Origin: Guillardia theta CCMP2712
Lineage: Eukaryota > Protista > Cryptophyta
DNA: 64,000 nucleotides
Direction: 5' to 3'
NCBI RefSeq assembly: GCF_000315625.1
Contig: NW_005434656.1
Location: 541,741-605,740 of the forward strand
Of this stretch, positions 23,532-48,500 are shown in pieces (the first letter of the stretch is position 1; each line of letters begins with the position of its first letter). The notes below the pieces were generated by a model. The model was not told the origin of the DNA and did no database searches. It worked only from the letters and a program-made list of their open reading frames with translations. Position numbers and translations under genes: made by a program.

Positions 23532-24054
23532 CTTCTCGGAAAGATGAGATCATATGGGAGCAGCGAAAAGGAGATCATAGAGAGGAAAAGCGACGAAGAG
23601 GAGGAGGAGAAAGGAGGAGTAGAGAGGACGAGAGTGACAATCAGGGAGAAAGTCCAACATACGAGGATAGAAAGAGAACAGGAGAGAAGGACTGCATTGA
23701 ACGGGAGGATAGTAGGATTGAGAGCAGAAAAGATGTGAGGAACGGACTGTGAGGTGACGAGAGGTAAAAATATAAAGGAGAGGAAGAGAAGTAGGATTGA
23801 AAGAACCAGACGCAGTAGATTGAGCGTAGAAAACGATACATACAAAAGGATAGGTAGTTGAAAGTTGAGGGGTGAGGAGTTGAGGGAAGAGATGTGAATG
23901 TAGACAGTGAAGACGAGAAAGGAAGGAATTGCTAGATGAGAGATAAATCGGCGAACAATTACGGACCTGCGAGAACAACGCTTCTGCTGAGCAACTTGCC
24001 TTCACTTTTCATGCTCCTGAATTTTCCGTGCAGGGTCTAACTAATTTAGCAAGC

Positions 24055-26108
24055 ATGGCACGACCTCCTGGCGCCGACGATGAGTATGCAGAGCTGCAGA
24101 AGAGATTTCAAATGTTGGAGAACGACCGCAAGTCGCTGTTTGAACACACACAACTTGAGGTCAAGAAGAACAAAGAAGCACTCGCGAAGCTCAAGAAAGA
24201 GAACAAAGAGCTCCGGTCAACTCTATCAGGGCTGATGAGTGATCAAGGGAAGTCGTCGGGAAAGGATTCAGAGATCGGCAAGCTGGAGCAACAGGTGCAA
24301 GAGCTCCGGAGGAGGCACGACGACGTTCGTCACCAGTGTCAGTTCCGTCAGAAGGAGCTGCAGTCTCTGCAAGACAAGCTGAAGGATCTGGAGAAGGAGA
24401 TGGCGAAGCTTCAGGACGATGACACTCCGTTGACCCGCAACATCAGGACGCTAGAGAACCGCCTTGACAAGGCGATGATCAAGTACAACGAAGCTCAGTC
24501 CATCCGCAAGACTTACGAGCAGATCGTGAAGCGTCTCAAGGAAGAGAGGATTGGGTTCGACAACCAGCTGGCAGCGATAGAGCGCACACTGAAAGCGAAG
24601 GAGAAGGATCTAGAGGAGCTGGTGCTCATGTCTCATGATGCGCAGCACGCCAAGGAGGTGGCCAAGGCAGAGCTGCTGAAGCTAGAGCATCAGCTGATGG
24701 AGGAGAAGAAGCAGCGAGAGAAGGAGCTGGCAGATCGCCGAGCCCTGGTGCAGCAGAAGGTTGAGATGAACCAGCGACTGGAGAAGAGAGACAAGATGAG
24801 ACGAGAGATGCAGCTGGTGGAGGGAGGAGAGCAAGCGGATCCCAGTGAGTCGAACATGAAGAAGACGCTGTTCAGCACGGCATTCCACTCTGCTCTCAAC
24901 GAGCATGTGCTCGAAGAAGAGCAGAAGAAGATCACAACCTACGAGGAGGCTTTCCGCAAGATTAAGGACGCCACCGGAGTGTCAGACGTTAACGAAGTGA
25001 TTCAAAAGTTCCTGACTCAGGATGAGACTCACAGCAACCTCGTGGTCATGACCAAGGAGGCTCAGGTCCTTCTTTTCATGCCTCTGACTTATGTGTCCGG
25101 TGAAAATCTGGCAGGCGAGGATCGACGCGTTGAACGAGGAGAAGGCTCAAGCGAAAGCCAAGGTAGAGGAGATCAAGTACAGCGGGACGGGATCGCTGGG
25201 GTCCAGAAGGATTGTTGACGAGTTTGAAAGTCACCTGTCGGAAGCGAACAGCAAGTGAGATGTGACTGTAGCGCGGAGAAAGCCTCTCACCCTCACTCGC
25301 CAGGTGCGAACGGAACAAGCAGAAGTACGAGAGAATCGCTAAGATTCTCATCAACGTCAAGTCTGGGGTGGAGCATCTCGCTGACAAGCTGGAACCGATC
25401 CAAGTAGATCAGGAGGCTGTCGTGATGACAGACTCCACGGTGGTCGAGGTGAGACGACGTCCTCCTCCTGCCCTGATCTCTTCTCCTTCGTCCCTCTCCC
25501 TCTTCTTTTTGTGGCTTCCCTCATCTTCTCTGCAGGTTCTGGCTCAGTGCGAAGCCAAGTTGATGAGGTTGATGGACATAGTGGAAGGAGATCAGCAGTC
25601 GGCTCAGCAGGTGGATTCTCACGCTCAGGACAAGCTGCTTGCATCTCAGGTGCGAAGATGCTGGGAGAGTGGCGGTCGAGTGCTGACTTGCCGTCTGCTG
25701 TCGCAGGAGGTTGAAATGCCCGCGTACAACATCCGCATCCAGGTGGGAGGAGCACCCGTCGCTCCGTTGACCTCGCGTGTTGACGCTGCAGCAGATCCCT
25801 CATGATGCGGACGACGACAGCGGGGACGATGAGGTGGAAGATGATGACCAGGAAGACGTTCCGGATCGCGATCAGGTGGGCTGAGCCGCGGGGAGTGACG
25901 GGAGTGTGACGCCGAGAGCAGGTCAAGAAGTATTCATCACTCATGCTCGAGAAGGCCAACAAGAAGCAGAAGCGCCAGAGGAAGCGGAAGGTGAGGGAGA
26001 GGAGGAAGTTGAGTTCAAGGGCAGGAGGATGATGGCATGCGGCAGGTTGGAGGTGAGGGAAGCGCCAAGGGCACCAAGAGCGGCGTGAAGAGACCGGAAA
26101 TGGCTTGA
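24055..26108 (+). CDS. Outer dynein arm docking complex subunit DC1/ODA3-like (CCDC151/ODAD3 family)
   Basis: LENRLDKAMIKYNEAQSIRKTYEQIVKRLKEERIGFDNQLAAIERTLKAKE and YEEAFRKIKDATGVSDVNEVIQKF match family motifs recalled from memory; acidic then basic tail ...KRQRKRK/VGGEGSAKGTKSGVKRPEMA*. Confidence 0.85.
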
Positions 26109-27792: not shown

Positions 27793-28860
27793 ATGCGGCA
27801 GAAAAAAGTCTTGACGTCTGGGACGAGCGCTGCCAGCCCTGGGAATGGCGAGGACAAGGAAGAAGAACTTCACGGCAGGATGCCGACCCCCCCGGCCGAT
27901 GTAGAACGAGCGGACGACGGTGAAGGGAAATTCGGGGCGAAGAGGAGGAAGAAGACAGAGGGCGGTGAACACTCTTGCGAGATCTGCGGAAAATCCTTCA
28001 AGACCAACTTCTATCTGAAGATGCACCTCTCGGTGCACGATGGGAACTCGCCGTTCAAGTGCGACATCTGTGGTAAGATGTGCACCTCCAAGGATGCGCT
28101 GGAAGCGCATCTCCGAACGCACACGGGGGAGAGGCCGTTCTCCTGCTCCCACTGTGGGAAGAGATTCGTGCAGAGGTCAGCGCTCAAGAGCCACTCCTAC
28201 ATCCACACAGGGGAGAAGAAGTATCCCTGCGATGTGTGCGGGAAGAAGTTTGTGGAATCTTCGCAGCTCAAGGTCCACATGAGGACGCATACAGGAGAGA
28301 AGCCCTTCTCTTGCAACATCTGCCAGCACAGCTTCACCACCCTGGCGAACATGCGCTGCCACCAGGTGCGGAAACATCCAGAGCAGCTGCAGGAAGGCGT
28401 GCGGAGCGAGCTGGAGAATCGGTTCGAGCGGAGGGTGCCCCCGTGCAAGGTCTGCGGCAAGCTGTTCAAGCATCACTCGAACCTGAGGAGACACGAGCGC
28501 TACCATGCAGGAGAGCGAAACCTCAACTGTAGCCTGTGCGGGAAGAAGTTCTACGACAAGTTCAACCTCACGAGGCACATGCGCGTGCACACGGGCGAGA
28601 GACCATATGAGTGCGAGGACTGCGACGCGACTTTCACAGACGAGACCAGCAAGAAGCGGCACGCGAGCAAGTGCGTCAAGCGTCAGGAGAAGGAGGGGAA
28701 GGAGGGGAAGGAAGAGGAGAAGCTGGAAGAAACCGCAGAGGAGAGCAAGGAGAACACGTCCAAGGAACAGGAACAGGGGCGAGCGATCAACAGCGAAGGC
28801 GCTTCAGGGAAGAAGGCGGAGGACTATGGGGAGCAGGTGTCGGTGCCGACTTTGTCTTGA
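27793..28860 (+). CDS. Kruppel-type C2H2 zinc-finger protein (7 C2H2 + 1 C2HC fingers), single exon
   Basis: Repeated CxxC...HxxxH with HTGERPF/HTGEKPF/HTGERPY linkers and an NLS-like KRRKK. Confidence 0.95.
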   Translation: MRQKKVLTSGTSAASPGNGEDKEEELHGRMPTPPADVERADDGEGKFGAKRRKKTEGGEHSCEICGKSFKTNFYLKMHLSVHDGNSPFKCDICGKMCTSKDALEAHLRTHTGERPFSCSHCGKRFVQRSALKSHSYIHTGEKKYPCDVCGKKFVESSQLKVHMRTHTGEKPFSCNICQHSFTTLANMRCHQVRKHPEQLQEGVRSELENRFERRVPPCKVCGKLFKHHSNLRRHERYHAGERNLNCSLCGKKFYDKFNLTRHMRVHTGERPYECEDCDATFTDETSKKRHASKCVKRQEKEGKEGKEEEKLEETAEESKENTSKEQEQGRAINSEGASGKKAEDYGEQVSVPTLS

Positions 28861-29149: not shown

Positions 29150-32061
29150 TCACTGTACGATTCGGATGATAGTCGTTGGTGCCGTTCCAGACGGATCCTG
29201 CGCTCCTTGCCATGCGACTGGCCTCAGCCTCGATCCACCGCCAGTGAGCCTGCAGACAGCGCTTAATCGGCCAGACAGTAAGACGAGACATGTCACGTGC
29301 AGACCTTGCGTGAAGTGATCTCCTCGGGAGGATAGTGGATGACGAAGACTTGAGGGGGGCGCGTGTCCCATGAGAGCTTCTTCTTCGCTCTCCCTCGGTT
29401 CATCCTTCTTGCCTGCCCAGCAAAGGGCTCTTGAGCAATCCTCGCGTCTTCGCGGCTCAGGTCAGACATGGACTGGATGCCCCTGGAAAGCTCCTTCATT
29501 AGCGGGTCCTCCATCTGGTTCGACAGCATCGCCAGGCGCTGGGCGTTTTCGTATCCTGCCACTCGGATGATTACCGATGAGCAGAAGACCCTCTCTCACC
29601 GTTAAGGAGAACTTCGTAGTGTTCGCCCTGCTTGCCTTCGAGCTCCTGCATGCTGTCAGCTCACAGAGGGAGCAGGGACGCGGGCAACCAGGGCCTTGGA
29701 GTAAGAGCGAGTTGCTTCATCGTAGTTGCTGAGACCCATAAACGCAATCGCCTGCAAGGAACTCAACCAGCCGACCACGGACGAGAGCGACGAGCCTGTC
29801 GGTGTCTTCCTTTCGCCCAGTTGGGCCTCAGCTCGATACAACGGTCCGCATCCTGGTGATGACTCATCAGGTTTCACGGCGAACAAGACGTGGGCAACCT
29901 TGAGAGCAAGGTCGAAAAGGTTGAGCTGAGCGTAAGTCGCACTCCTGTTGGACAGCAACAGAGCCAGAACATGCGGATCTGACTCGTTCTCTAGTGCCTC
30001 GGTGAAGAAAGCGACTGCAAGGGAGAACTCCTTCCTTCGGAACGCTTCATTGCCCTGCCTCATGGTGTCAGACTTTCCCACTTCTCCCAACTTATCACCT
30101 TCATCTTGGCGTCCGAGCTAGACTTGGAGGACGTCGTGTGCACTTCCTCAATCTTTCCCTGAGCTCAGCCCGAGCTGCAGAAGGCAAGGGGAATCACCTT
30201 GGGCGCAGCGTTGCGCACGTTGTGGGACGCCTCTTGTTTCTCGCTGGTCTGAGAGGATGCTGCGGCCATTAGGTAACCATGAAGTCTTCTAGAATCAATT
30301 CACACCTTTCGGATGCACTTTGGTGTCTCTTGAGGGTCCAACACACACCCGGAACAGCGAGATCTGTAGAAGGGCGTTTTCGGGATCAAGCTCCAAGCCT
30401 TTCTCATAGGCTGCCTCCGCTAGACCCATTTCGCCTTTGCCTTCATACCTGCGAGCTCACTTAGGGTTTGACATCCACCCGAGTGCTCGCACGCGACTCC
30501 CTGACGGCAGTATCCCTTCGCCCAGCTCGGCTGCAACCGAACGCACTCGTTGCTGTCTTTGATCGCCTGCATGCAGGTCAACTGAACAGTCACGAGGATG
30601 CGGGCCAACCTGGTCCCACATCCTCAAGCTTGCATAGGCTGCGCTTCGATTGCTGCAATGGTTCAGTGAGAGAGAACATTGAAGCCGGAAGACCTGAAGA
30701 GAATATGATTTTGAGGGTCAAGGACCATGGCATGGCTGTAATGCTCTATTGCTGCTTTGAAGTCTCCTAGCTCGAAGGCTTTGTTTCCCTTGGCCTGCTC
30801 CGATGATGGGGATTTGGTAGAAGAAGACGATGAAGATGAAGTTGACGAGCGCTCATTACGAGAAGATGGGCTTGTAAGAGTCACATTCTCGGGAACTCCT
30901 TTTCCTTGAGCAGAGTATCCTCGACTCTCACGTTGCAATGGTGTATTTTGATTGTCATCATGGGATGTGAAGTTGAGACGGGGATCCTGCTTTGAACTGA
31001 TTTCGTCATACGTGTTTGCCCTTCCGTCCTTGTCTGATGTTCGATTGCCTAAGACAGTGTGAGGAGGCCTAGCGTAGAATTTCGGCCTACCTCTTGCTTT
31101 GGATTTCTCTTGATCCAAACTATCGATCCTGCCTGTCGGAGGATAGTCACAAATCTATCGCGAAAGGCGAAACATACCTTGAATTGTTATCTTGTCCGAA
31201 TCCAAGGGCAATGCAGCTTGATAGGCTTCTATCTGAATCGTGTACGTCTTAAATTGATAAATGATATCATGTTTCAGTTACCGCCTGGTCCAATAACCCT
31301 TGTCCTGCAAGCGCTGCAGCCTTTCTGCAGTATCCTTTCGACCATTTCGGCGCCAACTTAATCACTCTATCCGCATCTCTCAGCGCCTGCCAACACGCTG
31401 TCAACAACACCGGAGATACTTACTTGGTCGATGAGATGGGTTTGCAGACCTTGTCATATTGCAACATATGGCAGAAGCAAGCTGAGCGATTTGAAAGCAG
31501 TTTAAACCTTCCAAGAAGTCACCTTAGTGGAGGAATGGGTGAGAATGTGACATACAAGTCGCCATGGGAGGGATTCAGATCAATCGCGATGGTGTAATGC
31601 TGGATAGCCTCTTCGAACGCTCCTTCTTTGAATGCCGCATTTCCCATCGCCTTGGCCATCTGAACCTGTGTCTCCGTGAGCCCCTGCTCGAACTTCTCAT
31701 TTCCTGGCACGAGCTCCAGAGCCTTGGTGAAAGCCTGCATGAGTAGGTCACTGGCAAGAAAGGATCGGAGAGTAAATCCTATCACTTGTTCCGCAACTTC
31801 AAACTCCTCCATAGCGAGTGCAGCCTTCGCTAACCGATAGTGACCTTGAGACCACTCGGGCTTCAGGTTGATGATCTGTTCAGCCTCCATCCTAGCTTCA
31901 TCGTATCTCTTTGCAGAGTGCAACGCATCACATTTCGAGCTCAGCAGGCGGATTATCTCTGTCAAGTCTTTGGTAGTTCTGAGGGCTTCAGTGTATGACG
32001 CTGCTGCTGCATCAAACTTTCCCATCTGCATGAAACGATCGCCTTGCGAGCTTCGGTCCAT
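29150..32061 (-). CDS. Multi-TPR protein (about four STI1/HOP-type TPR modules); 3' end approximate
   Basis: KAMGNAAFKEGAFEEAIQHYTIAIDLNP, AKGNKAFELGDFKAAIEHYSHAMVLDP, RQGNEAFRRKEFSLAVAFFTEALE...LLSNRSATY, LKPEWSQGHYRLA, LQPSWAKGYCRQG. Confidence 0.85.
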
Positions 32062-34483
32062 CTTGATGTTTGCTATAGTCTTGTGCAAACTTCGTCAATC
32101 TTGAAAGGCCTCGAAAGGGATCATCAATGTGTTGGTCCAGAAACTGCTGGATAAAATCAGATGAGAATAAGCTAATTGTCGATGCAATGATAGTTTGAGT
32201 TTACAGCTTCGATCATCTTATCGAGGAATCTAATCTGTCAAAACGTAGAAGATATAGATAATTCTACCCTCTCATCCATCCGCACTGACAGTCTGATGCT
32301 GGAAAGCCAAACAGCTTCTGATCGCCTTGCATTACATTGTGCTTGTTTTCAACTTTGGGAGTCGGGAGAAAAAGAGGACTCTCAAGGTCCTCTTTTTCTC
32401 CTTGCATTATGCTCTTCTTCTCCTCCTATAAATCCCAAAGCCCTATGTGTTCCTCCCTTTTGCATAACTCCCTCTCTTTCTGTTCATGATGTTTACCCTT
32501 CATCCTCGCCATTTTCGATCATTCCTCTTTCGTAGCATTTTCAAAGTCTTCTTATTCACCCTGTGAAGGCTTCTTACCATCTAGTGTTTCCTTCCTCATC
32601 TAGTCTTCCTGTTCCTCTTCCTGTTCCTCTTCCTCGCTCCTAGTTGCTCCGCTTCACCTCCGCCGCAGCTGATCACTGAAATTGCATGATCTCAATTTCA
32701 ACGTTCACATGACCCCACCCTTTACAGAAAGTACCCCACCCACCTCGACACCAGTGTCTACACTGATATGAAAACCACCCCACCCTCTTAGACAGAAAAC
32801 CTTGTTACCACCTACCCCCTTCTATTCAGACAAGTTCGCCCACCCTTTGTTGTATCGGTCAAATAGAAGAAAAAAAGAAAAGGGTAAGGTAGGAGGGGTG
32901 GGTTGTGGGGTAAAAACGGAGGGACGTGTGGTTGACCGGTGAATCAAGAGGGTGGGGTGGTGGCCAGGGGGGGGGTTCAGCTAATGGGTCAGGCTCCGGT
33001 GGGGTACTTGTGATGGAAAGGTGAGTGCGCGGGATCGAAAGTTTGTGGCATGAGGCCGAAGCGAAAGATGGAAAATGGCGCGACGAGAAGTTTGAGAGAG
33101 AAGGAATGCGAGCACCAAGACAAGAGACAAGACGAGCCGATCATTGAAGAAAGGGAGAGAGAGAAAAAATGTCGTCTGCCAAATCCGACCTTTCCTATGA
33201 CAAGGCGCGGCACCACAAAGCTTCAACTTAGGATAGGACGTTTGCAAAGCTTCTGCGAGATGATGAATTCCTCTCAGGCTGAATGTAAGGAACTTCAAAC
33301 GTTCACATTTTGATGCGTAATCAATGTTCAGGCCTCCTTCGCTCATCAAGCTGCGTAGATCGGTAGGTTTGCGATGATTGGCTGCGAAGTTTGCAATCAT
33401 GCGTGTTCACCCTCAGTTATACACTGGCTGGAGCTTTTTTGTTATTGGAGGATTCGAGCCTTGAAATCAATTTCACAAACTTTGTTGCTTCCGTTTTGTG
33501 AGATTTGTGAGACGGAAATTTAAGCCTTTGATGCAGTTTTTGTCAGGATCACTCTCAAACAGGATGACGATTTTATGGCTAATCCGAACGCAGAGATAAC
33601 CATCTGCAGCATATTTTCGATGTTGACGATGAAGCCTCATGTGGTTCCAGACTTTCATCAACTAGAAAATGAGCAGTTTTTTAATGGATGGCAAAGCTTT
33701 ATTCAATTTTCATCATGCCCAAGATCAAAAATATACCAGGTAGAAGCGGAAATCCTGAGACTTGTCAAATGGAAGTGTTGCTATCAGTGAGTATGCGGAA
33801 GGCAAACGTTTCTGTCTGACGGATGCTACAGGTGGGAAGCGCGAGAAGAAATCATTGCATGTTTTGAAAGATTTGGAGACGTCGGTGCAGCCCTGGCTTC
33901 CAGATCCAGATGCCCGAAGATTGACTGGAATGATGCTATGCGTTTCGATCCGAGCCAGGACTCTACTGTTGAGGACCTAGATTATTTCTTCAATGGCTTG
34001 TTTCTTTTCCAACACGAGCGATTGAATTTTGAAGAAGTGTCGACCCCGAATACCTCTGCAGAATCAACTACAATGGATTCGGAGGACTCGGAGTGATTCA
34101 GAGTTGGTCTGTTTTTTTTCAAGGTCTGATGAGCATTAAATACGAAAACAGTGAAGTCGTTCACTTACATTTGTTGAATCTCTTGCAATCTTGCTGACGC
34201 GTTTTGCCGTTCCTAATCCCTAGATCCAAATTTAAAGGGAAGAGAAAATGCGGACAGAGGATGAAGGGCATTGTATAATTGAGGGGGGGCAAAGACAGAT
34301 GAGAAGGAATGGAAGAACGCGAGATTGAAATGTCTTCATCATGAATGTTGAAGATAAGAATGAATGAAGTGAAGGAAAAGAAGAGCAACATGAGAAGATT
34401 TCAACAGAAGGACAGCAGGTATAACAACACAAGAGTCCTGATGACTTTTGACTTGTCTCTGATGTTTCAAACAACATTCACAT

Positions 34484-37400
34484 CTATTCACATCGTAGGT
34501 TTCGAAATGCTACATACAGCTTGTGTCCTTCTACAGTGCGCTTGTCCATGAACTCTCTCGTTATCATCTGCAGCTCACAGATATGCCCTGCTACCCCCAG
34601 CTCCCTCGTCCTCTCCGTCACCACCCGCACGTTCATCACTACGTCCCGGTACCCTCCCGTCGTCCTCGAGTTGTAGCTCGGGTCCAGCCTGTTCTTGATC
34701 CGCATCACTACCAGCTCAGGGTCTTCGAGGATGCGGTCGAGGCAGTCGCAGAGGTCCTGGAGGCGCTCGAAGACGATACACTGCCGCACCACGTCAAGCA
34801 GCCTGGGCACTTCACTGTTGTAGGAGCGAACAAGCTTCTGTATCGATCGTTCCAAGGTCTTGACATGCGCCCATCGGACCCTCTGCTTGAGATTCTCGTC
34901 TCCCATGGCGTCCTCCCATGCGACATACTCCACCGGGTCACTCCCCTCCTGGGAGTTGGAAGGGAAGAGACCGCGGGAGGTCGCAGCGAGGTCTTGAACT
35001 TTCTTGAGGAAGATCGGGTGTATGAAGACTGCCTGCATGTAGAGCTGGTCGAGCGACGTGACTCGAGGCTCCTCGCTCTCCTGCCACATGGTCTTACTGG
35101 GAACGATGTTGGAGAACGAGTGTTCATGGCTGCCCTTCATGACCCAGTCTAGGAGATCCGAGGTCGCTCGGGGAGAGTCGGCGGAGTCGTTGAGCCTTCG
35201 CTGAGCGATGCTCTCAGTCGAATGAAGCTTTGATGCGTTCTTGATGCGATCCAACAATCGCTGAGTGTCTTCGGAGGCAGAGAGCTTGGACCAGAGCTCG
35301 TCGTACTGCTGCCTCTCAGCCTTGATGTTGCGAGAGGCATGGAGGAGGTGCACCCTGCGCCCGATGATGAAGTAGAGCCACACGGTCATGAGGATGAAGT
35401 TGGAGTAGCCCATGTCGATCACCGTCACTGAGCTCTGAAAGAAGTTTGTCAGAGCGGCAGACCCTCCGACGGAGGTGAGGAACGAGTAGATGGGCAGAAG
35501 TCTCATCATGTACTGCTCTGCCAGCTGGATCACAAGCCCGAAGGACGAGTCGGAGATCGCCCAGATGAGCTGGTAGATGAGCCTCTGCACCGTTTTCGCC
35601 TTGGCGGCTGCCAGATAGAACTCCCAGGCTCCGACGACGTGGAACAAGGACGCGAAGAAGAACTTGGAGGTCTTGTAATGGCCGAGACGGGAGGCCAAGA
35701 CCGAGGAGAAGCAAGCAAAGGGCTGGTAGAAGGCAAAGAAGTGATAGAAGTACCTGTCCATTCTGACCTCGACGTTGAAGCTGATGCGAGCTCCCGTACT
35801 CTGCTTCCCCTGGTCGCAGATGCTCTCGCTCGGAGTCGCCTCGCAAGAGAAGTCTGTCCACTTCTTCCATCTCTCTGCTGGTAGCGCAACACCTCCGCTT
35901 GCCGGCTGGTCGAGGACGAAGAGATGAAACGCGACAGGGTCGAGTCCTTTCCCCTGCGTCTGACGGCTGAGGGAGGAGCGCCACCCATTGGCCTCCACTG
36001 GGGGAGAGAAGAAGAAGTAGAGAGAGTCGTTGAGAGCCTTGGAGGAGGAGGGGCTAAGCTCTGCACAGCTGTTCAGCACGAGGGTGAAGTTGGAGACGGA
36101 AGCTTGGGGCACGGAGGTACGCGGGACTTGATCTCGGTATTGGAGAATCTCAAGCCTTGCAACGTGAACAACAGAAGAGTTGTTGCTCATAATGGGGCGC
36201 ATGTTGTGTGTCGAGCTGTACATGTAGGTCAGCAGGATTCCCGTGAAGATCAGCGCGAGTCGGAAGGTTGTTTTGTGGAGAGCGTTGGTGACTGGGCTGG
36301 AGGAGAAGATCACGCTCGATGTCATTGAAGTTTGTATCCCCGTCACAACACTCCGCAGCTTCTCGTCCATGATGCCTCCTGGGTACCTCCCTCTCAGCTT
36401 CAGCGTCCAGTCAAGGAAGCAGCCATCTTGCTGCTGACCCTCTTCTTGCACGTCTGACCCCATCAGCTTGTCCTTCTCGAGGAGTCGGGCGGAAACTCTG
36501 TCTATGCTCTCTTGGATCGAGGACACACTCGTCTTCATCACCAGCTCCGCCTTCGACCTCCTGCTCGTCAACCTCTGCCACACACCCTGATCCCTCAGCA
36601 TGTGCTTCAACTTCCGGTACCGCAGCCGGCGCTCTGGAGTGCAGAGCCTGTGCAATCCGACAATGCTGAGCCGAAGTTCACAGATATGCCCTGCTACCCC
36701 CAGCTCCCTCGTCCTCTCCGTCACCACCCGCACGTTCATCACTACGTCCCGGTACCCTCCCGTCGTCCTCGAGTTGTAGCTCGGGTCCAGCCTGTTCTTG
36801 ATCCGCATCACTACCAGCTCAGGGTCTTCGAGGATGCGGTCGAGGCAGTCGCAGAGGTCCTGGAGGCGCTCGAAGACGATACACTGCCGCACCACGTCAA
36901 GCAGCCTTGAAGTGTCTCCTTGGCACAGGGAAAGGATCTTTTCGATCGCTCGGCTCGCAGTCTTCAGTCCTGCACTCTCGAGCTGCTTCCTTGCTCTCGC
37001 GTCCTCCTGCGCTTCCTGCAACCGCACATACTCCATGCCGCCGTCTGCAGCGACAGGCAGCGCCAGCATCCCGTTGGCGCCTTCAGCCAGCTTGTGGGCC
37101 TTACGTCGGAAGCACGGCTCAACAAGCACCGCTATGGCGTACAACTGATCGAGACTGCCAACTACTCCCAGGGCTGATCGCTGCTGAATGCTTTGAGCTC
37201 CGTTCTCATGGGACAGACCCGCAACAAGCTTGTAAACTCGTTGGGTGCGGCAGGAGCAGGAGACATTGACTACCTCCTGCGCGTCCTCCCCAACCTCCTC
37301 AACATGGGCTGAAACGGCAGCCTCGTGCTCCCTCACGCGATCTTGGAGGAGCCGAAGAGTCTCCGGGTCCCGGCTCATGATCGCTTCCCACTCCCTGGTG

Positions 37401-38362
37401 AAGACCGATCGGTCCTCCTCGATGAGCCTCTCTCCTCTGCGTATCAAGAGCATGCGGAAGAGAAGGGCAGAGCAGAGCAGGGCGAGGGCGATGATGCTGT
37501 CGTAGGGCACAAACCAAGGGGCTGCTGCACACAAGTAGATGAAGTTCGAGAGCATGCAAAGCTCTATCACGCACAACTCACAAAACAGCATCGGGCAAGG
37601 AAACAGCACCAGGTCCTACACAGACGTCAGGCAGGCAGAAGACGGCAGTACTCCAGTGCCTTGATCGCAACGAGCAAGAAGAGGAAGGCTGGAGTGCCCG
37701 AGATGGTCTTCTGGTATCGCTCGTTCCGGACTAGTCGCGTGAAGACGATGAGGTTCACAATCGCGTCCAGGAAGCCGAACAAGATGAAGATCTGGGTCTC
37801 AGATCAACCTACACGTGCGAAACTTCATCAAAGTTACCTGCCGAACCCAGGTGACTCTCTTCGCCATGGCCGCCAGCGTAGCGAGGATCAGCGCAATGGG
37901 AGGCAGGAAACCGCTCAGCAGCTCCAGCCTCGCTTCGGACCCGCAGGAGAGCCCTAGCTGGAACTCTTGAGGCTCCAAGATTACGTGGAGGTTGCCTTCG
38001 TTGGGGAAGAAAAAGCCTTTGTCACGGAGCTCTGATATCCCTCGCACTCGCAGAGCTATCCATGGCACGACGATCACAAGGGCTAGAAGCTGACCGACTC
38101 TCGAGCGCATGAGGGCGGTTAGCGGCTCCGCTGAGAAGAGGAAGGTGGAGAGCTGGCCGTGCCATCTGTTGGCGTCGTCTCGCACAGCCCTGTCCATGAA
38201 GTCTCCAGGGAGCTGAGTGCAGAGCATGACGAAGACCTGCATCAACTTTGGGCATGACCTCGGAGGTTCTGAAGGTCCTGGGGGAGGTTGAAGTGCTTCC
38301 ATGCCATCATCGCTGGTGGTCGGATGAACTTTGGAATTCTCAGGGTGCAGTAGGGATGACAT
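34484..38362 (-). CDS. ~1260-aa polytopic membrane protein: 2x[6TM + RelA/SpoT-like nucleotidyltransferase domain]
   Basis: Exons 38362-37838, 37791-37660 and 37615-34484 (introns GT-AG 46 nt and GC-AG 44 nt). Both cytosolic domains show K-x3-R-x-I-x-K...LLDVVRQCIVF...RIKNRL...GGYRDVVMN...HICEL(R/Q). Confidence 0.8.
34575..34804. repeat. 230-bp direct repeat, copy identical to 36678-36907
   Basis: Compared line by line; no mismatch seen; offset 2103 bp. Confidence 0.95.
36678..36907. repeat. 230-bp direct repeat, copy identical to 34575-34804
   Basis: Encodes RLLDVVRQ...VAGHICE in the first synthetase-like domain. Confidence 0.95.
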
Positions 38363-38507
38363 CCCTACTGATGCCTACCTGTGCCTTTGATCGGGACCTC
38401 TCCCAGTGGAGCTCGTCATGACCTCTCATGTTTGAGACCTTCCATGATGCTCATCACCAACATGACGTTGAAGGGCACGAGAAACTTTTATCGTCTCAAG
38501 GTATGAT

Positions 38508-38569
38508 TCGAGATCGAGATCGAGATCGAGATCGAGATCGAGATCGAGATCGAGATCGAGATCGAGATC
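38508..38569. repeat. (TCGAGA)n hexamer repeat, about 10 copies
   Basis: Seen directly. Confidence 0.95.
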
Positions 38570-38684
38570 AAGAGGAGGAGCAAGAGGGGAGGAGGAAGGG
38601 AGGAGGAGCAAGAGGAAGAGGAGGAGCAAGAGGAGGAGGGGACGCAGTTTTAGTAGTCCACAACTTCCGAGTCAAGCTTAGTTA

Positions 38685-39500
38685 GTACCCCCCTAACCCC
38701 TACCCCCGCTACCCGAGGCTACCCCCTACCCCTACCCCCACCCCCCACCCCTACATCTGGTTCTTTTTTTGTCACTTGGCCCTGCCCCTCCCCATGGAGT
38801 ACCCCCCTTATTCCCATTGTTAACGACCGTGGACCCACCCTCCTTACCGGATCTGCACACCGTCCGGGGTTGCTTCACCCCTCAAGTCAACTAAATCTCA
38901 TTTTTGAAGCAAGTCGAAGAAGACGGCCTTGTATGGGGGTGGTCAGAGTCCTTATAGGGGGTGGTCCACAGATCGGACTCTTGACGGCGTGGGCTATCAT
39001 CAACAGTTAAGGGGGTGGCGCGGCGAGTCCCGGCGGCGGCACATTGAGCGGCCGGGCCCGCCGGTCCGCCGGACCCGGTCTCCGGCAGAATCACCCGGTG
39101 ACCGTCCGATTTTCCGATCGGATCATGCGGCACTGTCGCCGCCTCCCGGAGTCCACGGTACGGTCCGATCCGGCGGGCCTGGGCTGCCGGGCCGCGACGG
39201 TGCTCTGAGCGGTCCGGGGCAACTAGTTAGGCTTCACTGAGTCAAGGGTTTGGGCCCGGCCGCCTCGGATTATCGCCCGGCGCCGCCACTGAGCCGCATT
39301 CGACACCGTCACACTCAGCGGCAGTGCCGGCTCGCCAACCCATTTAGCCTCTCCGCCGCGCCATTCACCGGGCCGGCGGCCCCGCCCCGGCGCCCGGCGG
39401 CACTACCGGCACGGTACGCGCCGGGCCGCGACCCGGCCCGTCGCCTGCCGCAGTGTCACTGGCCGGGCACTGTCACAGTGTCACGGTGTCACAGGCGGTT
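38685..39500. promoter_or_regulatory. Second intergenic C-run / G-run / GC-rich island between divergent genes
   Basis: Same motif vocabulary as 14050-15300 (CCGG, ACTGAGTCA, ACTGTCACAG, AACTAG, TCAAGAGG); function unknown. Confidence 0.4.
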
Positions 39501-45508: not shown

Positions 45509-48500
45509 TCACAAGGAGCAGGAGGCTGACGCTGGTCCCCCCACCCCTAGCGTGTAGTTCCACTCGAAGTTGTCGCCTGCAGTCTCAACGTCAGGGCGGT
45601 CGGGGATGGAGGGAGCGAGGAGAGGGAGCAGCGGGGAGTAGGAGGGGAGGGGAGGGGAGGCTGAGCGCGAGGAGGGCCCGAATTCCGATCTCTCACCTTG
45701 TTCGCACAAGGCAGCAGCATGCTGCTCGAAGGCTCCGCCGAGGAGGAGGCAGGAGGAGGAGTAGGTGAACGTGAAGACAGCTGCTCCCAGCATCCCCACC
45801 ACCGGCGCAGGTTTGAGCAGCCCTGAGGTGAAGATGCCGAAGTTCTCCACCCTAAGGTGCTGCGGTCAGAAGTGCGAGGAGCAGAGAGGAGGACGGGGAG
45901 GAGGGAGGAGTCAGAAGGAGGAGGAGGGGGATGGAGCAGGGCCGTACCTTCCATCTGTAGTCGAGAACTTTCCTCCCACGTACAAGAAAGACTTGCCGGC
46001 TGCCAGCGCATACACGTTGCCTTGTATGTCACCCATGGGCAGCCACTTCCCTCCCAGCCATCTGCCATCCCCTACAGTAAGCGCAAGACCCTCCTTCGCT
46101 CCCCTGCTCTCCTTCCCTCTGCTCTCCTTCCCTCTGCTCTCCCCGGTTCCTCTGCTCTGCTCTGCTCTCCCTTCCCCGCCTCTGCTCTCCTGGCCTTCCC
46201 CCCCTTCCCTTCCCTTTCCCTCAAGTCCCTTCCCTTCGCCCTCTCCCTTCTCTCCCCGCCTCATCTTCTCTCCTCTCATCTTTCGACTCTACCTTGCGAT
46301 CCTGGACACGTCGGACCCTCCGATGCCTCTGAACGATCCTCCCACCACCAGACTGTCCCGCCATCGCGCAATCACGTTCACTTCTCCCATCCTCACTCGT
46401 CCCCAAGGACACGCCCAGCTGCCGTTGAACATGGCGAGGCCTCCGCATGAGCTCCCTGCTCCGAGCGCTCCGAAAGGACCACCGACATAGAGGACGTTCC
46501 TGCGAAGACAGTGAGAGGGGGAGGAGAGGAGGGAGAAGGCAATGCAGGAAGGTAGAAGAGGGAGGGAGCAAGAGGAAAGGAGAAAAGAGGAAGGAGGGAG
46601 AGAGGGAGGATGAGGAGGTAGCGAGAGTCTTGTGCGTCTTACTCGCTCGTGTACGCCACTGCCACATGGCCATCAACCGTCGCGCCTCCCACGCAAGACC
46701 AGGTGGCTCCGTCCCATTGGGCGAGTCCTCCGCATCTCCATGCTCGACCTTCAACCTGCGCTTGAAATCAGATGAAGCTGGACAGAAGCGCGAAGAGAGG
46801 AGGAGGAGAGGGAGGAGGAGAGGGAGGAGGAGAGCGGAGGAGGAGAGCGGAGTGGAAGAGGAGAGAAGGAGGAGGAGAGGAGGGAGAGGAAGGGGAAGAG
46901 GACCGAGAGGAAGTGAGGGAGGGAAGCGGAGGGAAAGAGGTCACCGTGTAGACTGTCGAGAAAGTGCCGCCGACAACCAGGAAGGAGTTCACAACGCTCA
47001 TGGTTGAGATCGCTCCGTCAAGTCCCAAGCCCAAGTGACTCAGCGCGTTGCCGTCCCACATGACGAGATGGTTGGCCGTCCCGTCTCGTGCCGCGACGTT
47101 TCTGAACGTTCCTCCCACAAACAGCTGCTGCCCGAACAGCTGGACCGCGTTGATCCTGCCCGGCAACGAGAAGTTGCCGAAGGCGAGGAGGCGACGACCC
47201 TGAGAGAAGGCGAGGAGGGAGCTCTGGTCGGACTGCGGCAGGCTGTAGGCCATGAAGACGTCGAGGAAGAAGAAGCTCGCTCCTCCTTCCGTCCTCCTTG
47301 TGAACTCCCCCAGCTGGCTGACGAGCAGCAGGTCCACTTGCTGCTCGTCTGCTCCTGGGGGGGTGATGCACACGATGCGGTTGACGGACCAGGAGAGGAC
47401 GGGGCAGTCGGCGCCCCCGACCAGCACGCTCAGCTTCTCCTCGTAGCTCGGCACCCTGAAGCTCTGCCCGCTGATGGTGATCCACGTCCCCCCGCTCCTC
47501 GGCCCGAACGCGGGGGAGATGGAGGACACGCGGGGAGGAGGGAGGAGATAAACGCTTGAGCTCCCTGTCACCCCCAGCTGGTAGAAGTTCTGAGGTGAGA
47601 AGTCCGGGAAGGAGATCATGGCGCTGACGTTGACTGCCAGCAAGCCGAACTGGCCGGGCAGGACCTGAAAGGAGGATGAGGGAGCAGGAGAGGAGGGAGA
47701 AACAGAAGGAGGAGGAGGAGGAGGAGGAGGAGGAGGAGGAGGAGGAGGAGGAGGAGGAGGAGGAGGAGGAGGAGGAGGAGGAGGAGGAGGAGGAGGAGGA
47801 GGAGGAGGAGGTTCGGTCACCTTGAGAAGCAGGTTCCCCCATTCATCGACCGTCGGGTCGCCATCGAGTAGGCCGTAGTTGGCTGTTGAGAACTGCACGG
47901 CGAACTTCCAGTTGAGGTCCCCGCAGTAGGTCGAGTCGTAGAGCTTTTCCACCAGGCTCACGTTCACCGCCGCCTCCTGCTCATCTGGTCAGTCGCCCAA
48001 CCAGGGACTTCTCCCCTCCTCCTACCGCGATCACAGCGACTTGCGGCTTCACGGCGAACCGGATGAGGGAGAGGGACGCGTGAATGTTGAAGGTGAGGGT
48101 GACGGGAGGTGAAGAGGTCTCGTTCACCGTCGAGTTTGCCTCCCTGCCCCAGCCATTACCACCTCCACCTCGCTCCCCAGCTGAGAGCTCACCTGACTAC
48201 GAACGTGATGGTCTCCCTGCCGCACCCGGCGAAGGTGGCGAGGAAAGAGACGTTGCCGTCAGCCGTCATGTGAATCTGCGCGGGAGCGAAGGACGACGAC
48301 ACGACGTGGAAGACGAAGACCTTATCGCGCTCGTCGGGCGGCACTTGGACTATCATGCCGTGAGAGGAGATGGGGTCAAGAGAAGGAGGAGGGAAGCAGG
48401 TGCAAGGGGACGGATCGAGAGGGGAGGGATGCGGGAAGAGAGGAGGAGGCGAAGGAGTGGAGAGAACAAGACGCTGGAGGAGGAAAAGTTGTACACCTTC

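Follow-up and report, generated by a model that had tools for sequence, protein, structure and literature searches.

What does a eukaryotic cell do with a protein that carries, twice over, a set of membrane helices followed by a soluble domain resembling the bacterial alarmone synthetases? The question is raised by GUITHDRAFT_104927 of the cryptophyte Guillardia theta CCMP2712, which lies on the minus strand of a 64,000-nucleotide (nt) stretch of contig NW_005434656.1 (positions 541,741 to 605,740); this whole stretch is called the window here, and positions are counted from its first letter. An earlier note, made from the sequence alone, had read the product as an adenylyl-cyclase-like arrangement of RelA/SpoT-like domains. 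The answer that we favour, with a rough probability of 0.55, is that the protein is a multi-pass membrane receptor-enzyme built of two homologous units fused in tandem, in which the second soluble domain (C2) would act as a pyrophosphokinase and the first (C1) would be regulatory.

Eukaryotic alarmone synthetases are known as plastid enzymes, to which a few orphan soluble 'divRel' proteins have to be added. The assignment of the present domains to RelA/SpoT is itself already known and not new, because UniRef labels one paralogue 'RelA/SpoT domain-containing protein'. In our literature searches no description of the present family was found, and work on the RelA/SpoT-type (RSH) enzymes of diatoms does not mention such proteins; the receptor-like architecture, the asymmetry between C1 and C2, the size of the family and its concerted evolution appear to be undescribed.

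Gene structure and internal two-fold repeat

The gene is composed of three exons, whose positions are collected in Table 1 with those of all other features, and its spliced translation is 100% identical to a public hypothetical protein (P0001) of 1213 amino acids (aa). An in-frame ATG at 38362, upstream of the annotated Met at 38227, would add 45 aa. The first exon encodes the cytosolic N-terminus with the motif PGDFMD...LFSAEPLT, the first transmembrane helix (TM1), a short loop and TM2; the third encodes the end of the first membrane module (M1), a linker, C1, the second module (M2) with its ectodomain, another linker and C2, all in one open frame. Intron 2 lies directly before a D-L-x-L-F-P motif, and in most paralogues inspected the long final frame opens shortly before this motif too, as would be expected if the position of the intron were shared. 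Inspection of the translation of P0001 revealed no hydrophobic signal or transit peptide at the N-terminus, so that classical cryptophyte plastid import of this protein is unlikely.

The protein is a duplicated unit made of a juxtamembrane motif, TM1, a loop or ectodomain, TM2 to TM6, a long helix and a domain of about 190 aa. The strings on which the earlier note had based the repeat are all present in the translation: FLFSAEPLTALM and IFSSSPVTNAL stand before the first helix of half 1 and half 2, respectively, RRGERLIEEDRSVFTREW and RRVHLLHASRNIKAERQQYDELW follow the sixth, SLDQLY occurs twice, and LLDVVR, KNR...GGYRD and CEL are found in both soluble domains. C1 and C2 of the target are 56% identical, and the two-fold repeat is far beyond chance. 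The membrane halves are homologous in paralogue P0003 (BLASTP E 4e-7) and weakly alike in the target (E 0.11).

The soluble domains have a RelA/SpoT-synthetase fold

The fold searches and the later sequence searches were run on paralogues (P0002, P0003, P0004, P0008 and loci L013-L042) rather than on the target itself; P0004, used for the structure comparison, is 49-56% identical to it. A profile of 32 domains, with the target as its first row, matched two families only among the PDB sequences, namely RelP/YwaC (6fgk, E 4.5e-4, profile positions 64-190) and Tas1 (6ox6, E 7e-4, profile positions 61-101). Against PF04607, paralogue P0008 scores 34.2 bits, above the gathering cut-off of 27, and P0012 (26.4 bits), P0015 and P0041 (both E 7e-4) fall just below it.

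The structural comparison points in the same direction. The first 36 matches of the full P0004 model in Foldseek are all RSH synthetases, and VIA-align superposes C1 of P0004 on RelQ (5ded) with a Z of 14.4 and 2.6 Å over 145 residues. Other RSH proteins follow at Z 13.7 (RelP), 12.0 (Rel), 11.8 (CapRel) and 11.4 (Tas1, 21% identity), with 25 RSH entries at Z >=7 for the P0004 domain, and the next nucleotidyltransferase fold, Cid1, comes at Z 5.6. The model of the target's own C2 has a predicted local distance difference test (pLDDT) value of 89.8 and its secondary-structure elements follow the RSH-synthetase order. The fold that the earlier note had proposed from motifs is therefore supported, by profile and by model, for the soluble domains of the target.

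Pfam scans of the target and of a number of paralogues gave no match to HD (PF13328), TGS or ACT, which, together with the N-terminus described above, bears out the remark that neither an HD domain nor a targeting peptide could be seen. No Pfam match to the class III cyclase homology domain (PF00211) was obtained either, and the structural matches are RSH synthetases only; the likeness to adenylyl cyclases thus holds for the layout of the protein and not for its catalytic domain.

The active site is complete in C2 and probably degenerate in C1

In the RelP of Staphylococcus aureus, Lys80, Lys88 and Arg91 contact the ATP phosphates, Asp107 and Glu174 bind Mg, Tyr151 belongs to the G-loop and His190 contacts the ATP ribose (PMC5794853). 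With the family numbered as in P0001:1020-1213 and the RelP residues placed by profile alignment, these correspond to K70, K78 and R81 (phosphates), D92 and E165 (Mg), Y140 (G-loop) and H182 (ribose). Little or no variation occurs at any of the seven in C2 and in the proteins that consist of a single half, nor at R74, R95, K125-N-R, G139, R141, D142, H162, C164 and Q167. The family-invariant residues of the target C2 are K1089, R1093, K1097, R1100, D1111, R1114, K1144-N-R, G1158-Y-R-D, H1181, C1183, E1184, Q1186, H1201 and Y1204. Both metal carboxylates and the ATP contacts defined in RelP are constant in C2 across >45 sequences.

C1 shares part of this set. No C1, C2 or single-half domain departs from D92 or E165 (D1111/E1184 in the target C2, D410/E483 in its C1), and Y140 of GYRD, which aligns with the Tyr of GYRS in RelP, is present in all C2 and nearly all C1; in the synthetases this Tyr stacks on the acceptor base. 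Three positions set the copies apart: in nearly all C1 domains of the family, R81 is replaced by L, S or T, Q167 by R and H182 by a residue other than His. In the target C1 the replacements are S for R81, R485 for Q167 and R for H182, and both Lys, D410, KNR, GYRD and E483 are retained. In terms of the ATP-binding set R-x-K-x3-S-x3-K-x2-R plus ribose His, C2 keeps Lys, Lys, Arg and His but has no first Arg and an Arg in place of Ser, and C1 loses the last Arg and the His as well. The full motif set that had been ascribed to both domains is found in C2 only, C1 reading CELR instead of CELQ and lacking the late His, and the two domains are not equivalent as had been supposed. Because C1 lacks three nucleotide-binding residues and C2 is complete, C2 is probably the catalytic domain and C1 a degenerate, regulatory copy.

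The family has two additions to the canonical synthetases, an N-terminal SLDQLY... helix and a conserved C-terminal ...RCE. Most aligned C2 and single-half domains end in F-R-N-x-R-C-E at the very C-terminus (34487-34507 in the target), and an invariant Cys adjoins the catalytic Glu (H-x-C-E-L-Q). The terminal ...RCE and this Cys could be a sorting signal or redox-sensitive features.

Membrane layout and topology

An AlphaFold2 (AF2) model of P0004 (1195 aa) has six helices in each half, and its layout, mapped onto the target, agrees with the six hydrophobic segments per half that had been reported in the earlier note. In half 2 of the model, TM1 is followed by some 150 residues that form a beta-rich domain and then by five helices, and the fifth of these extends into the cytosol as one long helix. 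In the target the TM1-TM2 loop is about 35 aa in half 1, and half 2 has an ectodomain of about 150 aa containing ANGW, an invariant Trp, two nearly invariant Cys and several N-x-S/T sequons. The density of N-glycosylation sequons is 1.72 per 100 aa in the TM1-TM2 ectodomain vs 0.1-0.5 elsewhere, that is, about tenfold higher. Since this sequon-dense region has one helix before it and five after it, C1 and C2 are both predicted to lie on the same, cytosolic side, as the earlier note required of a receptor-enzyme.

The ectodomain is the most divergent part of the family. Its profile has no match in the PDB, and in Pfam the best match is F5_F8_type_C at E 0.014 in 1/22 members, which is not significant. 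A PLAT-like fold was considered for it and rejected, the structural match (Z 5.4) being within noise. The profile of the membrane module has no PDB match either (best E 0.62), nor any among the Atlas named clusters. A TRPML/PKD2-like module was rejected too, because the structural echoes (probability <0.1, Z 5-6) are within the noise range of the tool.

These results bear on the idea that the 12 helices form a transporter or channel, on which the RSH-like domains serve as pseudoenzymes or as regulatory modules that bind nucleotides, with no messenger made. A membrane module without detectable relatives, the clear loss of donor-binding residues from C1 and the weak resemblance to 6TM channels with a large S1-S2 loop domain would suit it. 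On the other hand, the matches to TRP-like proteins do not rise above the noise that the tool itself states, the TM5-TM6 loop of about 14 residues in the P0004 model is too short for a pore loop, and metal carboxylates and ATP contacts as constant as those of C2 would be unusual in a pure binding module. We consider this explanation improbable, and prefer to see in C2 a candidate enzyme coupled to a receptor-like module.

A large family in Guillardia and other cryptophytes

The target is one of many. In the 87-Mb genome of G. theta at least 86 places match the C2 domain, and we count about 29 tandem two-domain loci and about 20 that are single-domain loci or fragments. The single-half genes (L034-L037, L040 and L041; e.g. 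G000:C52:220800-224700) lack introns, have open frames of 634-765 codons and encode, in this order, TM1, ectodomain, five helices and one complete domain; they presumably represent the ancestral homodimeric form. One single-half member is found on the target's own contig, outside the window (C18:241805-243706).

The genome also has canonical long RSH genes (HD_4 plus RelA_SpoT) at two loci only, G000:C47:131263-132737 and G000:C24:131220-132315, and the family stands apart from the canonical algal RSH enzymes, as had been anticipated. Beyond G. theta, a 654-aa single-half transcript of Hanusia phi (P0173) is 90% identical to a G. theta single-half gene, and two-domain proteins occur in cryptophyte transcriptome assemblies (P0023, 1084 aa, from Cryptomonas curvata; P0043, 1520 aa, from MMETSP). 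A profile search of 1.84 billion representatives gave 6310 matches, 528 of them below 1e-30, and the named homologues are all from cryptophytes (Guillardia, Hanusia, Rhodomonas, Cryptomonas, Hemiselmis). An Atlas look-up gives hints of ciliate and diatom relatives of the domain, to be taken as a lead only.

Paralogues are 49-54% identical to each other in their catalytic domains and about 21-23% in the ectodomain and helices, and their loci include clustered and inverted duplicates. A repertoire of this kind recalls receptors of innate immunity or of self/non-self recognition, and the RSH domain could accordingly be an effector of growth arrest or death and not a messenger synthase, acting through ATP depletion by (p)ppApp, as in Tas1, or through pyrophosphorylation of tRNA 3'-ends, as in CapRel and FaRel2. 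The lineage-specific expansion to about 50 loci and the much faster divergence of the ectodomain (21% identity vs about 50% in the catalytic domain) are in keeping with this explanation. Moreover, of the structural matches Tas1 has the highest identity (21%), with a striking resemblance in a local motif, CapRel and FaRel belong to these matches as well, and a published list of N-terminal effector domains in fungal NLRs includes RelA_SpoT (10.1101/2022.03.16.484565). Families that sense environmental cues expand and diverge in the same way, though, no antitoxin or immunity gene is evident among the neighbours scanned, and no sequence feature tells a toxic from a signalling output. An immune or recognition role, the main alternative to the explanation that we favour, is, in our opinion, unlikely, albeit to a lesser degree than the transporter-borne pseudoenzyme, which is the less likely of the two given the invariant active site of C2.

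Gene conversion between C1 and C2

Two segments of the target, one in each soluble domain, are identical to the last nucleotide. Tandem paralogues have such tracts of their own: in 16 of the 21, C1 and C2 share a tract that is 230-490 nt long and 82-99.6% identical. In protein sequence, the C1 core (positions 84-166) matches the C2 of its own gene at 90-100% identity. For the C1 tail (167-192), identity with the C2 of its gene drops to 14-36%, against 53-73% with C1 tails from other genes. In the target the tails of C1 and C2, outside the tract, are 14% identical. Five genes (L028-L032) are unconverted, with 35-45% identity between C1 and C2. Cores that are alike within a gene, C1 tails that are alike between genes and the presence of unconverted members indicate an old duplication followed by recurring gene conversion.

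It might be objected that the two-fold layout is an artefact, due either to a duplication in the assembly or to two neighbouring single-half genes wrongly joined in the gene model, and a perfect 233-nt repeat only 2.1 kb apart is what such an error could leave. Assembly error as the source of the repeat is ruled out by the different conversion tracts that other paralogues possess. C1, M2 and C2 are moreover encoded in one frame of 1043 codons, the same layout recurs at about 29 loci, the halves differ strongly outside the tract, and two-domain proteins also occur in the cryptophyte transcriptome assemblies. We therefore give this explanation hardly any credence and take the tandem protein as real.

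The tract of the target does not quite reach the positions that set C1 and C2 apart; its end lies two residues before Q167/R485. In one tandem paralogue (G000:C5:13800-19300; L026:2066-5248:+), C1 retains the C2-type R81, Q167 and H182, and its N-terminal part and core show 95-100% identity with the C2 of that gene; to judge from these residues, conversion may have made both of its domains catalytic. The family is a clean natural example of concerted evolution within a gene, in which conversion homogenises the two domains and selection keeps three function-defining differences just outside the tract.

Comparison with known systems

The closest relatives of C2 are RelQ and RelP (SAS1/SAS2, PF04607; SAS, small alarmone synthetase), with which the family shares the alpha/beta synthetase fold (Z 13-14) and the order of the motifs. 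The target C2 further has in common with them two Mg carboxylates, two Lys and one Arg for the ATP phosphates, the Tyr of the G-loop and the ribose His. The two bacterial proteins, of about 200 aa, are soluble and form homotetramers, whereas the domain of the family is fused to six helices and an ectodomain and is duplicated in tandem; the family also differs by the absence of the first Arg of RxK and by GYRD, CELQ, the SLDQLY helix and the ...RCE end.

Tas1, the (p)ppApp synthetase of the Pseudomonas aeruginosa type VI secretion system (6ox6), gives the best identity among solved structures, 21% over 147 residues, and shares with the family the pattern K-S-x-E-R-A-x-x-K-x4-Y-K-G-D-x5-D-x2-R, including an Arg three residues after the catalytic Asp. 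However, it is a secreted interbacterial toxin with an immunity protein and without a membrane module, and the profile aligns with it at 61-101 only. The antitoxin or immunity neighbour, or the secretion context, that would be expected of a toxic synthetase (CapRel, FaRel, Tas1) does not accompany the target, a eukaryotic nuclear gene with introns whose scanned neighbours are unrelated.

Among eukaryotic proteins, divRel is a divergent, synthetase-only SAS described in Dictyostelium, Aspergillus and diatoms (Atkinson et al. 2011, PMC3153485). It resembles the family in being eukaryotic and synthetase-only, without an HD domain and without a known function, and differs in that the description in PMC3153485 is of soluble proteins, with no mention of the term transmembrane (0 occurrences), of a tandem form or of a cryptophyte. 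The long RSH proteins of plants and algae (RSH1-4), of which G. theta has two (C47, C24), belong to the same synthetase superfamily, but they combine an HD hydrolase with plastid targeting and match PF04607 and PF13328 strongly; the present family has neither the HD domain nor the targeting and is separate and much larger.

Mammalian-type transmembrane adenylyl cyclases have the same 6TM-C1-6TM-C2 layout as the target, with a helix running from TM6 into the catalytic domain. These cyclases and the bacterial homodimers of six helices and a cyclase homology domain also resemble the family in occurring as half-size and fused forms, with one domain complete and one degenerate. Their catalytic fold is nevertheless unrelated, their active site lies at the C1/C2 interface, and the family has a large TM1-TM2 ectodomain besides. 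To our knowledge each domain of the known RSH enzymes holds a whole active site, and none is formed at a dimer interface, so that the analogy does not extend to the catalytic site.

Proposed mechanism

The following mechanism is compatible with these observations. The fast-evolving ectodomain, extracellular or luminal, would sense a ligand, and the helix bundle with the helix that continues TM6 (conserved I-x2-D-x3-Y-x3-W) would carry the signal to the catalytic domain. C2 would then most likely make a product of the (p)ppNpp type by pyrophosphate transfer, with the beta,gamma-phosphates of ATP moved to the 3'-OH of an acceptor nucleotide, as suggested by its complete active site. C1, which has the same fold minus three nucleotide-binding residues, would most likely act as a regulatory or scaffolding partner. 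The partner of C2 would be C1 or, where there is one half only, a second subunit, and as homodimers the single-half proteins would fulfil the same function; a complex prediction for C1 and C2 of P0004, made by a predictor that did not use the family alignments, scored 0.00 and counts neither for nor against such a pairing.

Several observations weigh against a receptor-enzyme of this type. The target protein alone has no Pfam hit at E<=1, and the full-length P0004 model has a moderate pLDDT of 67.8, with a poor half 1 and values of 75-90 in the second half. Canonical features are altered in the family: RxK is without its first Arg and the Ser is replaced by Arg, GYxSxH has become GYRDxxxN, and EIQIRT has become CELQ without Arg; for this reason the chemistry or the acceptor may differ from those of (p)ppGpp synthesis. 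Finally, a stand-alone small alarmone hydrolase was not detected, the HD_4 matches of the genome being confined to the two long RSH loci, which leaves no obvious HD-type hydrolase for any cytosolic product.

Surroundings of the gene

The neighbours of the target are a TPR and a zinc-finger open reading frame (ORF) on one side, and low-complexity ORFs without family matches followed by an IPT/TIG ORF on the other (Table 1). Just upstream of the gene start, at 38496-38645, a (GATCGA)n microsatellite is followed by a GGA/GAG-rich tract, and C-rich degenerate units of the CCCCTA/CCCTAC type, similar to telomere repeats, occupy the intergenic sequence at 38680-38760. Between 40000 and 46000 the GC skew is +0.30 to +0.35 and the AT skew reaches +0.30 over about 6 kb, and ORFs without family matches overlap on both strands; this may be a purine-rich repetitive or low-complexity region.

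Table 1. Features of GUITHDRAFT_104927 and of its neighbourhood, in window positions
Feature	Position	Strand	Remarks
Coding exon 1	37838..38227	-	annotated Met at 38227; identical to public model P0001
Intron 1	37792..37837	-	46 nt, GT-AG; minus-strand sequence vs P0001
Coding exon 2	37672..37791	-	40 codons; TM3 and part of TM4
Intron 2	37616..37671	-	56 nt, GT-AG; directly before the conserved D-L-x-L-F-P motif
Coding exon 3	34484..37615	-	1043 codons and stop, no internal stops
M1, six predicted helices (P0001 ~44-228)	37442..38098	-	spans both introns; hydropathy and P0004 model mapping
Helical linker 1, continuing TM6, RRGERLIEEDRSVFTREW...	37169..37441	-	P0004 model mapping
C1 (P0001 320-500), RelA/SpoT-synthetase-fold domain	36626..37168	-	alignment and paralogue structure comparison
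Cytosolic inter-half linker	36272..36625	-	ends in juxtamembrane motif PGGIMD...IFSSSPVT; sequence
M2 TM1 (P0001 619-639)	36209..36271	-	P0004 model mapping
Ectodomain (P0001 640-788), beta-rich	35762..36208	-	P0004 model and family alignment
M2 TM2-TM6 (P0001 789-925)	35351..35761	-	P0004 model mapping
Helical linker 2, continuing TM6, RRVHLLHASRNIKAERQQYDELW...	35069..35350	-	P0004 model and family motif I-x2-D-x3-Y-x3-W
C2 (P0001 1020-1213), complete RelA/SpoT-synthetase-fold domain	34487..35068	-	ends ...FRNLRCE
Gene-conversion tract, C2 copy	34572..34804		233 nt, 100% identical to 36675-36907
Gene-conversion tract, C1 copy	36675..36907		233 nt, 2.1 kb from C2 copy
ODAD1-like coiled coil (outer dynein arm docking) ORF	24028-25218	+	unrelated neighbour
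Multi-C2H2 zinc-finger ORF	27793-28860	+	unrelated neighbour
TPR protein ORF	31519-32088	-	unrelated neighbour
IPT/TIG-domain ORF	46768-47967	-	unrelated neighbour

Conclusions

At the level of the organism we put forward a tentative proposal, in our judgement more apt to fail than to hold: cryptophytes may possess, in the cytosol and not in the plastid, a messenger or alarm system based on (p)ppNpp-type nucleotides, with about 50 surface receptors whose output is a homologue of the alarmone synthetases, each combining one catalytic and one degenerate domain. If this were true, it would be a eukaryotic counterpart of the receptor cyclases, built on a different nucleotide chemistry, and the family would constitute a new class of receptor-enzymes in which the synthetase fold is coupled to a module of six or 12 helices with a variable ectodomain. 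Pyrophosphorylated nucleotides, or the pyrophosphorylation of RNA, would then be an output of signalling or defence in the eukaryotic cytosol.

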